Shown: positions 1 to 7,030 of the stretch, in pieces | How positions within the stretch are numbered: the first letter of the stretch is position 1 | Layout of the letters: the number at the start of each line of letters is the position of its first letter | From: Eukaryota sp. TZLM1-RC | Taxonomy: Eukaryota > Protista > Metamonada: BaSk clade | Length of the DNA stretch: 64,000 bases | Reading direction: 5' to 3' | Assembly (NCBI GenBank): GCA_040285825.1 | Contig: JAUPSS010000004.1 | Location: forward strand, 1,964,550 to 2,028,549 | Program-made: the position numbers and the translations under genes | Notes under the pieces: model-generated | The model's database searches: none | What the model was told of the DNA's origin: nothing | What the model saw: the letters and a program-made list of their open reading frames with translations, nothing else

Positions 1-541
1 AGGGGATGTTTGAAAGCAATGGTATAACATCTGGATGTAACTTTTCAATGTAACAGACCAAACCAGAACAAGCTGAAACAAGGAGAGGAAGACGGGACTC
101 ACTGGACATACGTTGTTCAAGTTCCGCTTTAGTGGCTAAGAGGGCAACATCCACAGCAGTAGACATATCAACAACAAAGGATGACGGAAACAGAGTCTTA
201 AACAGTCCAGAGAGACGTCGCATTGCACAGAGACCAGAAACGCCCCAAAAGCCTGCAAAGGAAGCTCGTGCTTGGGGTGTAATTGAAACGACAATTGGCT
301 GAGGAAATTTGAACAAGGTTGCAAGGGATTGTGATGAGAGAAGAACTACTTCAGCAGAGGTAACACAACCAGAACACGCGAGACAGCTTTTGAGACTTAT
401 GTTTACAGAAGATGTAGCAATTTCATTCATAGCAGTAGTGGTATCATCAGCAGCAGCAAGTTTGCCTGAGTCTTCAGTCAAAGTCACAACACAATCCTCA
501 GCGGGAGTAAAATCAGATATATTAGCAAGACGCAAAGCCAT
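1..541 (-). CDS. NAR1: Cytosolic Fe-S assembly factor Nar1/NARFL (CIAO3), hydrogenase-like; 5' part only, runs off the window edge
   Basis: Not in the ORF track. Manual translation from ATG at 541: MALRLANISDFTPAEDCVV...ISLKSCLACSGCVTSAEVVLL...VSITPQARAS...LPLLVSACSGLVCYIEKLHP. This matches the Nar1 motifs CLACSGCxTSAE and SACPGWICYAEK. Frame is open to position 1. Confidence 0.9.
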   Translation of the reverse strand, partial: MALRLANISDFTPAEDCVVTLTEDSGKLAAADDTTTAMNEIATSSVNISLKSCLACSGCVTSAEVVLLSSQSLATLFKFPQPIVVSITPQARASFAGFWGVSGLCAMRRLSGLFKTLFPSSFVVDMSTAVDVALLATKAELEQRMSSESRLPLLVSACSGLVCYIEKLHPDVIPLLSNIP

Positions 542-681: not shown

Positions 682-2688
682 ATGCGGGAGCCTCTTTTAA
701 CATCAAAGAAGCATTTGCCCTTCTTTTATCATGGGCCTCTGAGCTATCCTCCAAAGATGGAAAGTTCTGAAGCTCGCATTGGTAGTGGTTTCACATCATT
801 GATGGGAATGGCGTGGCTTTTTAACCATTTCTATTTAGAAAATGATGTGCTTTCCTATGTGGTTATTGTTGCCTTTGGAGATTTTTTCCTTCGCCTGGTT
901 TTGGGGCCACTGTTTTCACCCCTAGGGCTGCTCTCCAAGATTCTGTCGTATGTTTTTCCTCCCAACCGGTGTTCAAGTGTTCCTAAGCGACGTGCGTACT
1001 TTGTTGGTTCATTGTTCACCGCTATTTCAGCTATTGCGCAGTACCTTGGTTATCCCATTGTTTCTGTTGTATGCCTCGGAATGCTGACCATTTTTTCGTT
1101 TGCTGAAGCTGCATTTAGTTTCTGTGTCCTGTGTGTTTTCATCAAGGCCATTGCCCAGTATCGAAAGCAAAGGTTACTTACCTCTTTGTATTCGTCTCTA
1201 GAACCTCATTCTAAACCATTCACCAGATCTCATCCTCCTGTTGATAAATCCCCCCAAGGCCAATACGACTATGATTTAGTCTTCATAGGTGGTGGTTCTG
1301 CTGGTATGGCAGGCTGTCTTTATGCCAAAAAACACTATGGTCTCCGTATCGCCGTTATTGAGTACCATGAACAGTATGGTGTTGCCGGTACATGTGCTAC
1401 CCGTGGTTGTATTCCTAAGATTCAAATCCATGAAGCTGCTTCTCTTAAAAGAACACTCAGTCCTGCTTTCAGCAAGAAGTATGGCTTTAATGTTGATTAT
1501 GAATTTGACTGGTCCCAATTAATGTCTCAAGTTCAGAACAACACCGAAAATACTTCAGTAGCATACACTCAACAGCTTGAGTCCAATGGAATTGATCTCT
1601 TCAGAGGTTTTGGCAGCTTCGTAGATCCCCATACTGTAGAAATCTCTGACCCTGATGCCAACTCCAAGAACCAAATCACCGGTAGAAGAATCATCGTTAG
1701 TGTTGGTGGTAGACCAAATCTACCCAAGATTGGAGGTATTGAACACGCAATCACCTCTGATGACTTTTTCAAGCTGAAAACCCAACCCAAGAGCATTGTT
1801 GTTGTTGGTGCTGGTTTCATTGCTCTTGAATTGAGCACTTTGCTTGCTGAACTTGGTACTAAAGTCACTGTAATGGTTCGAAACACCATTGCTCGTGGTT
1901 TTGACAAGGAAATAGTCGAAAAAATAACCCAGGATTTGGAAGAAATTGGTGTAGAATTCGTCAAAGCCTCACCTGTTGGCATCTCCAAAACAGAAGATGG
2001 CTTATCCACAAAGTATGAAATGAAGGATGGTTCAAATGGAACAATTGATAGCGAAATGGTACTTTTCGCCACTGGAAGAACTCCCAACACAGACACTCTC
2101 AACCTGGAAAATGCTGGTGTGACCATTGCTAAGAATGGAAAGATTCCAACCATCAATGAACGAACCAATGTCGATCATATTTATGCCGTTGGTGACGTAG
2201 TTTTTGGAATCCCAGAACTAACCCCTGTCGCCATTCAATCCACCAAGCTTTTACTTGATCGTCTTTATGGTGGAAAGCTTACTAGAATGAACTATGCCAA
2301 TGTTGCAACTACTATGTTTTTAACCCGTGAATATGGCTCTGTTGGTTTAAGTGAAGAAAAGGCCAAGGAAGTTTTTGGCAAGGACAACGTAACCTGTTTT
2401 GTTAGTGCTTTTACTCCAGCTTACTGGGCATTTGTCTCTTCCGAGTTTCAATGCTTTGTGAAGATTGTTGTTCATGACAGAGATGACCGAGTTGTCGGAA
2501 TCCATCTTTTATCTCCTAGATTTGCTGGTGAAGTTATGCAAGGATTTTCTAGCTTCATCAACTGTAAAGGAACCAAACAGCAACTTGACCTTACCACTGG
2601 TATCCATCCCACGCTTGCTGAACAACTGAACATGTGTACTACCATCAAGGGTAAGGGTAATGCTCAAAAAACTAGTTGCTGAGGTTAA
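682..2688 (+). CDS. TXNRD: High-molecular-weight (animal-type) selenoprotein thioredoxin reductase with an N-terminal DUF4395-like membrane domain; UGA at 2680-2682 read as Sec (C-terminus TSCUG)
   Basis: FAD motif GGGSAG; redox disulfide GTCATRGCIPK; NADPH motif VVGAGFIALE/MVRNTIARGFD; GDV..PELTPVA; GIHPTxAE. Ends TGC TGA GGT TAA (C-U-G-stop) with a SECIS downstream. The N-terminal ~160 aa are hydrophobic with FSP, PKR.A..VG and EAAFSFCVLC. Confidence 0.93.
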
Positions 2689-2710
2689 GCCCTGCCACTA
2701 GGCGGGGCTT
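2687..2710 (+). promoter_or_regulatory. GC-rich hairpin immediately 3' of the Sec codon (candidate Sec-redefinition-like element)
   Basis: AAGCCCTGCC-ACTA-GGCGGGGCTT: 10-bp stem with one G-U, beginning 4 nt after the UGA. Confidence 0.55.
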
Positions 2711-2724
2711 TTATTTCAACACAT

Positions 2725-2795
2725 GCTGAAGTGGATATTTGTGACGGAAACTTCTCTCAATGCGTAAGCACGAGAATTTCCTGATTTCATTTAGT
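2725..2795 (+). promoter_or_regulatory. Eukaryotic type II SECIS element in the TrxR 3' UTR
   Basis: Helix I GCTGAAGTGGA/TTCATTTAGT; core GTGAC (2741) with TGAT (2782); helix II GGAAA-C-TTCTC/GAGAATTTCC; unpaired AA (2759-60); mini-helix TGC-GTAA-GCA. Confidence 0.9.
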
Positions 2796-2943: not shown

Positions 2944-3873
2944 TTACCTTGAAGAAACAGAAAACTGAGCAGCAGCAAAGGCTTTGGGAAACTTCTCACC
3001 TTCTTGTTTCAATTCATCCAATTTTGCTATAATTTCACTAAAATCTGGTTCAATTTGCCGAGAATCAGAAGACATCTCCTCTGATTTGTGTGAAGTCAAG
3101 ATTTTCAAAAGGTTGGAAATCACCTTGTTGCGTTCTTCATTTGTAAAACTCAATCCCTTTACTCTTAGTGCCCCAATGGTATCCCCAACAATACCAGAAG
3201 CTCCTTCAACCAGAACTTTTCTTGCCTTAACGACTGCTCCTACTGTTTGACTCACCATCATTCCCTTTGCGATGGACGCATCGTATTGAATGTCAACGAT
3301 TTCAAAAGAGAGGCAGTAAACACCACAAGCTCGCGCTCGTTCAGTGAGGAGCTGACACATGGCAGTAGATACTTCAGAACAGTCAGATTCCAAGGAAGCA
3401 TGTTTGGGCTTATCAGTATGGTAGGGGTAATTCGATGTGGTTTTTTTCAAAACAGCAAGACTTAAATTAGATAAGTAGTGATGTACGTTTTCAATGTTGA
3501 GAATGGCCTTGACTGGGTCAACGATTCTATACGTACACACGCCTGAAACTTGGAGCATGCATCCTGAGGAATCAGTAACGGTGATTTGATCATGTCTGAT
3601 TGAGAATACTTTAAGTGAAGCAACTTTGATTGATCTCCCAAAAACAGATATCCAGTGTATTCCAGGAGAGCAAACCTTGTAAAACTTACCAAACATGAGT
3701 ACTAGATGATTTTCATTGGGAGCAACAACAAAGAAAGAAGCTAACAATGTGACCGGAAAGAAGAGTATACCAATAAAGATAGCAACGATTCGTTCAAATG
3801 TAGAGATACGTGATACAAGACGTAGTGGAGGGGAATGTACAAGTAAATAGTCAGAATCAATGTATTCTGACAT
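2944..3873 (-). CDS. SPFH / Band-7 (stomatin-like) membrane protein
   Basis: N-terminal TM segment followed by VVAPNE..LVLMFGKF...PGIHW and V.GV.TYRIVDPVKAIL.IEN; ARKVLVEGA..IV is typical of SPFH proteins. Confidence 0.85.
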   Translation of the reverse strand: MSEYIDSDYLLVHSPPLRLVSRISTFERIVAIFIGILFFPVTLLASFFVVAPNENHLVLMFGKFYKVCSPGIHWISVFGRSIKVASLKVFSIRHDQITVTDSSGCMLQVSGVCTYRIVDPVKAILNIENVHHYLSNLSLAVLKKTTSNYPYHTDKPKHASLESDCSEVSTAMCQLLTERARACGVYCLSFEIVDIQYDASIAKGMMVSQTVGAVVKARKVLVEGASGIVGDTIGALRVKGLSFTNEERNKVISNLLKILTSHKSEEMSSDSRQIEPDFSEIIAKLDELKQEGEKFPKAFAAAQFSVSSR

Positions 3874-5072: not shown

Positions 5073-6360
5073 TTAATGAGCACGTACATTGTGAAACTCA
5101 GTAATACTTGAAAGTATTGAGTTAAAATAACGTGGTAGAGCCTTAAAGAGTGAGAAAACAATTCTGTTCTTCCAAATAAGTTGATCAAAAGAACGTCCTG
5201 AGTCTTTTAAGAAACTGCCTAAATCATTCAAGAAAGATAGTCCTTCCCTGCCTAAAGTACCAAAAATAGAAATTCCAATTGGAACAAAAACGATGTTTCT
5301 GCCACGTTGTTTGTTCAAACGTACAAGTAAATCATTATACTTCGAGTGCTTGCTCCTTTCTGCATTCTTGAGGGTTGATTCAATGTCAGAAGACGACGAC
5401 AACTTCCAAGGAGAAACAGTTGTACAATCAATAATTAATTCCTGGCCGCTATGCAAAGCACATTGCATGGCACCTCTTTTTTGACTTTGAGCAAGCTGCA
5501 TTTCATCAAAAACTCGTTCTAGTCGTACTGGATGATGAACACTCTTCAACAAATCATAAATGCAATCGCGAACGGCATTGTGAATTATCGACCTCTTCTG
5601 AGTGAACTTCCTACAAGACAAGACATGAGTATAAGAAGCAACTGCTCCACATTTACAACGAAATTTTGTTAAACATTGAGGGGGAGGTAAGTTCAAACGT
5701 AGTCTCATAATTGTTAAAAACTGGGAATCGGAAAGCAACAGACCAAAACGGCGAGGTACTTGGGTTATTAGGCAAGATGCACTGTTGATAAAAGAACCCT
5801 TATCGCAAAGAGAGGATAGAAATGTTGCAAAGGAAGAATCACCTGAATTGTTAGCCAAGCTAATTTATTCTTCTAGTGATTCAGCTTCGAGAGCATTAAT
5901 CAACTTCTTTTGCAGTTTAGGGACAGTTCTCAAAAAATTACTTAAATCTTTAACTTCAACAGAGAAGCAAACATTCAAAACCAGAGTTTATCAGTGCAGT
6001 TATGAAGGAATATTTTGACAAAGAGAGCAGCACTTGGGTTAGAATTAGTGACTAAATCAATCCAGCTATTAGGGAATCGTACAGATAATTCAAACAAGAA
6101 ATTCTTAATGCCTCCCTAGAACGCAGCATTTGTCAAGATTGATGAACGAGTCAAACCAACACCACCATGCAAATGTGACCTGAAACAGTGAAGCGGAATA
6201 TCCTTAATGTTCTTAACACTGAGTAAGTCAGCCAAAAAGTTGGATCTTCGAAAAAAAACAATTTGATTTCAGGTGTGGTCAAATCTGGTGGAATAGAGCG
6301 AATCAGGTGATTTACTTTAGAACTGAAGCATAACCTATCCACATGGAATTTAATATGTTC
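5073..6360 (-). mobile_element. CRE-type non-LTR retrotransposon relic (post-RT region + CCHC + restriction-like endonuclease)
   Basis: ORF 5073-5858 has CKC..HVLSC, HNAVRD, D..TV, E..K..KY and W.NRI.F; upstream fragment LCFSSKVNHLIRS. Confidence 0.85.
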
Positions 6361-6519: not shown

Positions 6520-7030
6520 GGCTTCTTACACTCTTTATAAATTCATTCAGTGTAAGTAGATTCAATTTCGAACTATTGGAAAACTATTGAAGCCTGAAGT
6601 TGCTATGCAACAATATCTTTGATATTCCCCTAATCGACACAATTCCCATGAATTTATTGAGTTTGGATAGGTTTCTTCACTTGGTTTATTTATTTTCTTT
6701 AATTTTTTTATTCAGTCTTCGAATATTGCTTTTAATTCCCCTATTTTCCTTTTCATTCTTATATAAGCGTTTGGATCAGATATTTTTAAATCACAATTTT
6801 GTGATACCCTTTATATTGTTGAATACACATATCGCACATCGGGCACTAGTTCTATATTCATCCTTCAGATATACTACGATATCCAATACCACGTAAATTT
6901 TTTCCCAAATTTGCACCTCTTATAGAAGCTGTTGTTCCTTTACGATTTCTTCTGGGATTTCAATCCCCAAATATCAGTTACAAATGTAAAAATCTGTACT
7001 TTTTGAACTGGTGGTTATTTCCATAGATCG
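6520..7030 (-). pseudogene. Fanzor1 (eukaryotic TnpB) relic, family B
   Basis: Manual translation: NHQFKKYRF / LIFGD(W>*)NPRRNRKGTTASIRGANLGKNLRGIGYR / VYLKDEYRTSARCAIC / IHG. These are the FGDW, RuvC-II DEYRTS and CxxC motifs of Fanzor1, with stops and frameshifts. Confidence 0.8.

Follow-up and report, generated by a model that had tools for sequence, protein, structure and literature searches.

The closest counterparts of the protein analyzed here include the thioredoxin glutathione reductases (TGR; e.g., those of Schistosoma and mammalian TXNRD3), which are high-Mr, selenocysteine (Sec)-type thioredoxin reductases (TrxR) bearing an additional redox-active domain at the N terminus. This domain is a soluble glutaredoxin (Grx), probably reduced by the flexible Cys-Sec tail of the partner subunit, and to our knowledge all high-Mr thioredoxin reductases characterized so far are soluble enzymes. 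A gene of the anaerobic protist Eukaryota sp. TZLM1-RC (GCA_040285825.1), located in a 64,000-nt stretch of contig JAUPSS010000004.1 (positions 1,964,550 to 2,028,549 of the forward strand, hereafter the window), instead joins a TrxR to DUF4395 (PF14340), a domain of unknown function found in bacteria and eukaryotes (649 representative clusters). A sequence-only reading of the window had described the product as a membrane-anchored selenoprotein TrxR with an N-terminal DUF4395-like CxxC domain and a non-canonical redox loop, and all of these sequence-level claims hold. The features of the locus are collected in Table 1.

Table 1. Features of the DUF4395-TrxR locus (window coordinates; aa, residues of the encoded protein; RCL, Skoliomonas sp. 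TZLM3-RCL)
Position	Strand	Feature	Remarks
682..2688	+	Full coding sequence: 666 codons, then TGA (Sec), GGT (Gly) and TAA (stop)	Start at 682 supported by a conserved N-terminal motif (HLPFFY...YPxKME) shared with the in-frame upstream sequence of the RCL orthologue
766..1143	+	DUF4395 membrane domain, aa 29-154	Modelled helices 28-52, 56-73, 80-89 (short), 100-122, 125-145 and 149-171; small sheet of strands 25-27 and 96-98
1123..1134	+	CxxC (Cys148/Cys151)	Glu142 lies six residues upstream
1162..1263	+	Linker, aa 161-194: end of helix 5 and a low-confidence tether	pLDDT 58-62 around aa 171-190, below 50 for segment 179-183; 33% identity to the RCL orthologue
1264..2679	+	High-Mr TrxR module, aa 195-666: FAD, NADPH and dimer-interface domains	Invariant in the alignment: GGGSxG, R400/R405, H642/E647 and C666
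1393..1410	+	FAD-proximal redox-active pair Cys238/Cys243 in the non-canonical loop CATRGC	CSLRGC in RCL; CVNVGC in all other fusions and in 122 of 125 TrxR-type proteins collected
2677..2688	+	TGC TGA GGT TAA (Cys-Sec-Gly-stop), TGA at 2680-2682	TGC TGA GGT TAG in RCL; TGC TGA GGC TAA in Chroomonas
2689..2716	+	8-bp GC-rich hairpin (2689-2696 pairs with 2701-2708) and a U-run, directly after the stop codon	Partial terminator-like match (isrJ 3' hairpin); not conserved in RCL
2739..2787	+	SECIS-like element, type II form: GUGA (2741-2744), helix of about 10 bp with one bulged C, AA bulge (2759-2760), mini-stem UGC/GCA, UGAU (2782-2785)	Same layout with different helix sequence but kept pairing 43 nt after the UGA in RCL; present with a canonical AUGA in Chroomonas

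Pfam searches identified DUF4395 with an E value of 2.7e-14 (54 bits against a cut-off of 24.5, covering profile positions 4-125 of 130), followed by Pyr_redox_2 (PF07992, aa 197-520, E 1.3e-55), Pyr_redox (PF00070, aa 371-446, E 2.5e-14) and Pyr_redox_dim (PF02852, aa 541-649, E 1.8e-22). The DUF4395 domains of the RCL orthologue and of the Chroomonas-type fusion score 44 and 42 bits, respectively, and NCBIfam has no model for this domain. The TrxR module is complete: the FAD-binding motif GGGSAG is at aa 203-208, the His-Glu dyad (H642 and E647) is present, and the best solved relatives are Drosophila, rat and human TrxR and TGR (E about 1e-100). Within the membrane domain, the motifs VPKRRAYFVG (aa 100-109) and EAAFSFCVLC (aa 142-151) are found. 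Interestingly, the cysteines of the redox loop (aa 238-243) are aligned and invariant while the residues between them are not those found in most TrxRs, leaving open the possibility of altered chemistry.

The frame has no stop and aligns end to end with its orthologue, so it is intronless here. No Met lies between aa 134 and Met209, and Met209 is inside the FAD-binding motif; internal initiation therefore cannot give a functional soluble enzyme. It could be argued that two adjacent genes are read here as one, that the gene is a pseudogene, or that the TGA is a genuine stop giving a Cys-terminated enzyme without Sec, as there is no transcript or protein evidence for this organism and the public annotation of the RCL orthologue ends at the TGA. 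No SECIS family was matched by Rfam searches of the 3' region at E values up to 10 or of the whole window at gathering score, so the SECIS-like assignment rests on manual motif and fold comparison of three sequences. RNAalifold on a MAFFT alignment of the two skoliomonad 3' untranslated pieces recovered only the mini-stem because the helices are misaligned, and single-sequence folds were used instead. However, the TGA-GG(T/C)-stop arrangement is conserved in three lineages, SECIS-like hairpins of one layout follow in all three, and transcriptome assemblies of three other taxa carry the same fusion, which makes an artefact very unlikely. The terminator-like hairpin could suggest bacterial contamination or recent transfer, but this was rejected because of the eukaryote-type Sec tail and SECIS-like layout and the orthologue in a second skoliomonad genome.

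The architecture is not unique to this genome, which is one correction to the sequence-only reading. A word-based search restricted to the DUF4395 region found only the orthologue of the sister species, RCL (55% identity overall), but an exhaustive profile search detected further DUF4395-TrxR fusions in Pygsuia, Cantina, Chroomonas and two environmental sequences. These have K-x-(G/S)-C ends, and Sec-type tails are found in all of the fusions. Those of Chroomonas, Pygsuia and Cantina are single assembled transcripts, and the Chroomonas-type contig is a polyadenylated transcript carrying both domains. The fusion occurs in a sister species and in three other eukaryotic supergroups, but it is rare (a few of 649 DUF4395 representatives), and no description of it was found in the papers searched. 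The TrxR modules of all six fusions can form one group (the constrained tree has lnL 18.3 higher, p-AU 0.87). However, on its own the DUF4395 domain of the window protein hits standalone proteins before the other TrxR fusions in a single-sequence phmmer search, and in the short DUF4395 tree it sits on an unresolved long branch, so that an independent fusion, or strong divergence, cannot be excluded.

The two Cys of the CxxC are the only invariant columns in 97 diverse DUF4395 domains, and also in 68 standalone ones, and Glu142 is at least 90% conserved. DUF4395 is also the best conserved part of the protein relative to RCL, at 67% identity against 54% for the TrxR module. Elsewhere, DUF4395 is fused to glutaredoxin, to Thioredoxin_8, to Grx plus SLAC1/TehA-family anion channels and, in bacteria, to thioredoxin (Trx). 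In Bacteroidota, AhpC/TSA or Redoxin genes are its immediate same-strand neighbours in about 38 of 75 loci; the three neighbour families were seen in 18, 18 and 8 loci within three genes. These loci were retrieved with a 10-sequence subset that returned almost only Bacteroidota and are related to one another, so the counts are not independent events; three look-ups of standalone DUF4395 proteins in metagenomes gave contigs too short for context. An alternative is that DUF4395 acts only as a membrane tether, placing an otherwise ordinary Sec-TrxR where it reduces soluble thioredoxin or acts directly on membrane oxidants, with the CxxC in a structural or metal-binding role. The complete TrxR module and the long, low-confidence linker are compatible with this, and Sec-TrxRs are probably able to reduce lipid hydroperoxides, ubiquinone and selenite directly. 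However, a mere anchor would not need an invariant CxxC, would not be the best conserved part of the protein, and would not recur with Grx and Trx domains in unrelated architectures, and we consider this alternative unlikely.

AlphaFold2 models gave a pLDDT of 92 for aa 20-195 and 91 for the full-length protein. The hydrophobic part is modelled as four membrane helices plus a fifth, half-amphipathic helix that starts at the CxxC. The modelled helices and the positive-inside charge pattern put the N terminus, the basic 2-3 loop, the CxxC and the C-terminal reductase on the same membrane face, in agreement with redox partners being attached at either end. The sequence-only reading had proposed that electrons could pass into or across a membrane; this predicted topology favours the former, with reduction of DUF4395 by the Sec tail at the cytosolic face. 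A transmembrane conduit in the manner of DsbD or CcdA, serving thiol-disulfide proteins or oxidants on the luminal or extracellular side, finds some support in a frequent upstream neighbour in Bacteroidota, a 407-aa protein with a C-terminal Redoxin/TlpA-like domain of a kind that is probably a periplasmic client of CcdA/DsbD, and in a Cys-rich insert (CxxC...CxxC) in the far-side loop between helices 1 and 2 of the cryptophyte-type fusions. In the window protein, however, the far-side loops are 2-3 residues long and have no Cys, all conserved polar residues lie with the CxxC on the reductase side, and the two Cys sit together at a helix cap and not in two re-entrant half-helices, so that transfer across the membrane appears improbable.

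Taken together, the gene encodes a single polypeptide in which a predicted four-helix DUF4395 membrane domain is tethered by about 25 flexible residues to a complete, dimeric, Sec-type TrxR. We infer, with moderate confidence, that electrons run from NADPH to FAD, to Cys238/Cys243, to Cys666-Sec667 of the partner subunit and then to Cys148/Cys151 of DUF4395, following the logic proposed for the Grx domain of TGR. In this reading DUF4395 is a membrane-resident disulfide acceptor, a membrane counterpart of thioredoxin, which would reduce an as yet unidentified substrate, possibly a membrane-associated oxidant or a small anion, at the cytosolic membrane face in a pocket lined by the conserved R32, D67, R71, K102, R103 and E142. 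There is no dimer model to show whether the Sec tail can reach Cys148/Cys151; the relay remains an inference, and a CxxC beside basic residues could equally be a metal or metalloid site. A related suggestion is that the CxxC and the basic pocket bind an oxyanion or metalloid such as selenite, tellurite, arsenate or sulfite, which the attached TrxR, Grx or Trx would reduce, in some lineages coupled to a SLAC1/TehA-type channel. In its favour, DUF4395 is fused to SLAC1/TehA-family channels, with or without Grx, in at least seven representatives, a CLC channel gene lies within three genes of it in 8 Bacteroidota loci and a molybdopterin oxidoreductase in another 8, the conserved R32, R71, K102 and R103 surround the CxxC face, and the hosts are soda-lake organisms (PMC11316075). 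This argument is purely associative, no oxyanion-binding motif was identified, and the basic residues may only reflect the positive-inside rule; it is doubtful as it stands, and is a special case of the same relay with a specified substrate rather than a true alternative.

A reductase built into a membrane through a domain with its own invariant CxxC would be a new way of taking NADPH-derived electrons to a membrane surface, and would give a testable function to DUF4395. The same logic explains the Grx-DUF4395, Trx-DUF4395 and Grx-DUF4395-SLAC1 proteins and the peroxiredoxin-fold neighbours in Bacteroidota. The hosts include anaerobes with extremely reduced or absent mitochondria, so the enzyme may be part of their oxygen or oxidant defence. 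More speculatively, and on balance less likely than not, DUF4395 may be a previously unrecognized class of membrane-integral thiol-disulfide oxidoreductase whose cytosol-facing CxxC is recharged by TrxR, Grx or Trx and delivers electrons to a lipid or quinone oxidant, or to an oxyanion handled together with SLAC1/TehA-type channels. The DUF4395-TrxR fusion would then be a self-contained NADPH-to-membrane reductase that arose early in eukaryotes and survives in a few, mostly anaerobic, lineages.

Although the TrxR module matches TGR chains at E values of about 1e-94 to 1e-97, the protein is not a TGR: no PF00462 glutaredoxin hit was obtained, the N-terminal domain is instead DUF4395, the linker is longer and the FAD-proximal loop is CATRGC rather than CVNVGC. 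DsbB and the bacterial VKOR homologues fused to a thioredoxin-like domain are probably four-helix membrane proteins with a CxxC at the start of a helix and a thioredoxin-fold partner, but their active sites face the periplasm or lumen and oxidize partners using quinones, while here the CxxC is predicted to face the reductase side and is expected to be reduced. DsbD and CcdA take electrons from the cytosolic thioredoxin system through cysteines, but use two Cys on separate re-entrant helices and deliver electrons across the membrane, while DUF4395 has one CxxC at one face. Homology to VKOR, DsbB or CcdA is not supported: there was no Pfam hit, a Foldseek search of the PDB gave nothing at E <= 0.001, a VIA-align search of 48,161 chains returned only generic helical bundles at Z <= 9.3 (within the stated noise for helical proteins), and neither search listed CcdA, DsbD, DsbB or VKOR among its top 50 rows. 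In the mercuric reductase system, MerA, a class I pyridine nucleotide-disulfide oxidoreductase with a C-terminal Cys pair, appears to receive Hg(II) from cysteines of the small membrane protein MerT, but these are separate proteins, no HMA or MerT domain is present here, and there is no evidence for a metal substrate. Standalone and Grx- or Trx-fused DUF4395 proteins share the domain, the invariant CxxC and the Glu six residues upstream, and the model matches ESM Atlas DUF4395 clusters at TM scores of 0.74/0.78 and 0.70/0.54. In the Bacteroidota-like subset that was aligned, the bacterial forms carry an extra N-terminal Cys-Pro that the eukaryotic fusions lack, and the partner of DUF4395 in the window protein is the reductase itself, not a thioredoxin-fold protein.

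The forward strand of the window carries an open reading frame of 666 codons that continues in frame beyond a TGA codon with GGT and TAA, so that the end reads Thr-Ser-Cys-TGA-Gly-stop. As shown in the table, Pfam places a DUF4395 (PF14340) domain ahead of three pyridine nucleotide-disulfide reductase domains, with DUF4395 scoring well above its curated cut-off. The nearest solved structures are insect and mammalian thioredoxin reductases (TrxR) and thioredoxin glutathione reductases (TGR), with E-values of about 1e-94 to 1e-102 over residues 192-660. Alignment with canonical enzymes showed that every catalytic element of a high-Mr TrxR is retained, namely the GGGSxG FAD motif, Cys238 and Cys243, Arg400/Arg405 in the NADPH domain, His642/Glu647, and the terminal Cys666 that precedes the TGA. 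The motifs noted in the sequence-only reading (PKR.A..VG, EAAFSFCVLC and CATRGC) are all present, and its observation of a DUF4395-TrxR fusion is confirmed. The loop between the two FAD-proximal cysteines is CATRGC; only this protein and its orthologue (CSLRGC) differ further. The best database hit is that orthologue, a hypothetical protein of Skoliomonas sp. TZLM3-RCL (RCL), a metamonad from soda-lake sediment, with 55% identity over 96% of the length. The window has about 35% G+C, and 35.8% is listed for Skoliomonas litria (PMC11316075).

Coordinates of features in the window, in its encoded protein and in related sequences
Sequence	Feature	Position	Strand	Detail
Window	ATG start codon	682	+	Start of the 666-codon frame
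Window	TGA (Sec) codon	2680-2682	+	Followed in frame by GGT and TAA
Window	GC-rich hairpin and U-run	2689-2716	+	8 bp; starts on the base after the TAA stop, 7 nt after the Sec codon
Window	SECIS-like hairpin	2739-2787	+	Helix of about 10 bp with one bulged C; three-pair mini-stem
Window	GUGA of SECIS-like hairpin	2741-2744	+
Window	Unpaired AA of SECIS-like hairpin	2759-2760	+
Window	UGAU of SECIS-like hairpin	2782-2785	+
Window	SPFH/Band 7 (stomatin-like) membrane protein gene	2944-3873	-	309 aa; convergent neighbor
Window protein	DUF4395 (PF14340)	aa 29-154		E 2.7e-14, 54 bits, curated cut-off 24.5
Window protein	Pyr_redox_2	aa 197-520		E 1.3e-55
Window protein	Pyr_redox	aa 371-446
Window protein	Pyr_redox_dim	aa 541-649
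Window protein	Predicted strands	aa 25-27, 96-98
Window protein	Predicted helices	aa 28-52, 56-73, 100-122, 125-145
Window protein	Predicted short helix	aa 80-89
Window protein	Predicted last helix	aa 149-171		Begins with the CxxC and turns basic after about 12 residues
Window protein	Predicted short loops	aa 53-55, 123-124		Two to three residues long, no Cys
L001 (RCL orthologue locus)	In-frame upstream ATG	5887-5889
L001	In-frame sequence upstream of annotated start	5887-6000		MYGTINHSPRHLPFFYQKGFAYPKK
L001	Intron (GT...AG)	6646-6676		31 nt; between CSLR and GC
L001	TGA codon	7949-7951
P0271 (cryptophyte-type DUF4395-TrxR fusion)	Cys-rich insert (CxxC...CxxC)	aa about 205-230
P0121 (cryptophyte-type DUF4395-TrxR fusion)	Cys-rich insert (CxxC...CxxC)	aa about 105-130

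The TGC-TGA-GG(T/C)-stop arrangement is conserved in two other fusions, the RCL orthologue and the distant Chroomonas-type fusion (contig L002). Downstream of the window's TGA lies a hairpin whose layout, with GUGA and UGAU flanking a helix, an unpaired AA and a mini-stem, appears to correspond to the type II SECIS form. RCL has the same layout 43 nt after its TGA, with a different helix sequence but with pairing kept, and Chroomonas has it with a canonical AUGA and an AAA bulge. However, no Rfam SECIS model matched at E-values up to 10 or at gathering score, and an automatic consensus fold of the two skoliomonad sequences recovered only the mini-stem, so that this element is regarded as a probable, but not proven, SECIS. 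The stop codon of the convergent SPFH/Band 7 gene lies about 155 nt from the end of this hairpin. A second hairpin, immediately following the TAA stop, resembles a bacterial intrinsic terminator (partial match to the isrJ 3' hairpin) and is not conserved in the RCL orthologue; it may be a Sec-recoding stimulator.

The 25 residues preceding Met26 are conserved with the in-frame sequence upstream of the annotated RCL start, with HLPFFY...YPxKME present in both. The assigned start codon is therefore likely to be real, and the public RCL annotation, which starts at the second Met, is probably short by 38 residues. No methionine is found between residue 134, inside a membrane helix, and Met209, inside the FAD-binding motif, and internal initiation cannot yield a functional soluble reductase. 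An intron splits the redox-active motif of the RCL orthologue, whereas the window gene has no intron at this position.

To determine how common the fusion is, a profile of three DUF4395 domains was searched against 1.84 billion representative proteins, which identified 649 proteins at E-values up to 0.001. Pfam scans of the long hits, together with cluster look-ups, revealed further DUF4395-TrxR fusions in Pygsuia biforma (724 aa), Cantina marsupialis (716 aa), Chroomonas sp. CCMP1168 (879 aa) and two environmental sequences, all ending in K-x-(G/S)-C, which is the Sec type. Three of these are transcriptome assemblies, and the Chroomonas-type contig L002 ends in a poly(A) run and carries both domains. 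Other architectures were also identified: glutaredoxin-DUF4395, Thioredoxin_8-DUF4395, CRAL/TRIO-glutaredoxin-DUF4395, Usp-DUF4395, and a second fusion class, glutaredoxin-DUF4395-SLAC1/TehA anion channel, variants of which lack the glutaredoxin (DUF4395-SLAC1) or carry a C-terminal hemerythrin (DUF4395-SLAC1-hemerythrin, Ostreobium quekettii); this class (related proteins P0128, P0152, P0205, P0139, P0148, P0184 and P0169) links DUF4395 to anion channels. In an ESM Atlas cluster of bacterial DUF4395 proteins, 30% of members have a thioredoxin domain. Several protist Sec-type TrxRs (e.g., the soluble TrxR relatives P0003 and P0100) carry an N-terminal extension of about 100 residues with a Cys-containing motif (for example, WSACPYF) that Pfam does not name, and which may be another uncharacterized redox extension. 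Full-text literature searches for DUF4395, PF14340, IPR025508 and membrane-bound, membrane-anchored or transmembrane thioredoxin reductase found only passing mentions, and none described this architecture. The fusion is therefore rare, spread over four eukaryotic supergroups and apparently undescribed, but it is not unique to this genome.

In an alignment of 97 diverse DUF4395 domains, the only invariant columns are Cys148 and Cys151, with R32, F68, S79, P101, K102, G109 and E142 conserved in at least 90%; the same holds for 68 standalone proteins. AlphaFold2 with this alignment gave a confident model (pLDDT 92), and the full-length model has a pLDDT of 91 and a pTM of 0.84. The 2-3 loop and the sequence following the CxxC are rich in Lys and Arg. 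By the positive-inside rule, the N-terminus, the 2-3 loop, the CxxC, all conserved polar residues and the C-terminal reductase are predicted to lie on one face of the membrane, presumably the cytosolic one. This agrees with the fusion pattern, in which Grx and Trx domains are always N-terminal and TrxR is always C-terminal, as four membrane passes place both ends on the same side. Because everything conserved is on the reductase side, a reaction at that membrane face is favored over a relay across the membrane, which is unlikely. The cryptophyte-type fusions do carry a Cys-rich insert in the short loop between helices 1 and 2, on the face opposite the reductase, but the window protein lacks it. 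Between the window protein and RCL, DUF4395 is the best conserved part, with 67% identity against 54% for TrxR and 33% for the linker. Fold searches found no solved relative: Foldseek gave nothing at E <= 0.001, and an exhaustive VIA-align search returned only generic four-helix bundles at Z <= 9.3, within the stated noise for helical proteins. VKOR, DsbB and CcdA did not appear among the top matches of either search.

The three genes on each side of DUF4395 were examined in 75 bacterial loci, almost all from Bacteroidota. The most common neighbor families are a 407-aa protein with a C-terminal Redoxin/AhpC-TSA domain (18 loci), a 213-aa AhpC/TSA protein (18 loci) and a 1-Cys peroxiredoxin (8 loci), which between them are immediate same-strand neighbors in about 38 of the 75 loci. 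A CLC channel and a molybdopterin oxidoreductase each recur in 8 loci, in some genera. As these loci are related to one another, the counts do not represent independent events. The standalone bacterial DUF4395 proteins of this group (loci L005-L084) have an extra invariant N-terminal Cys-Pro (SCPVD...) that the eukaryotic fusions lack.

In a tree of TrxR modules, the four non-skoliomonad fusions form a supported clade (SH-aLRT 98), with the skoliomonad pair on a long branch nearby. Holding all six together gave a tree with a log-likelihood 18.3 higher than the free quick search, with p-AU 0.87. In the short DUF4395 tree, the TrxR-fused domains of Pygsuia, Cantina and Chroomonas are sister to the Grx/SLAC1-fused domains, and the skoliomonad pair is unresolved; on its own, the window's domain hits standalone proteins before the other fusions. 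A single origin with strong divergence in skoliomonads is the simpler reading, but a second, independent fusion is not excluded.

The sequence-only reading, which proposed that a new TrxR architecture could pass electrons into or across a membrane, is supported with two corrections: the fusion is not unique, and a relay across the membrane is unlikely. The protein differs from known enzymes of its kind in its DUF4395 membrane domain, and it also carries the first coherent functional lead for DUF4395. The recurrent links to SLAC1/TehA and CLC anion channels and the basic pocket around the CxxC make an oxyanion or another anionic oxidant one candidate for the terminal substrate, and a membrane lipid or quinone oxidant is another. 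The flow of electrons is inferred to run from NADPH to FAD, Cys238/Cys243, the Cys666-Sec667 tail of the partner subunit, and then Cys148/Cys151 of DUF4395. This inference is supported by the invariance of the CxxC, the recurrence of DUF4395 with three different classes of thiol reductant, the predicted location of the CxxC on the reductase side, and the strong conservation of the membrane domain. The inferred scheme follows the logic of TGR, in which an N-terminally fused redox domain appears to be served by the Sec tail.
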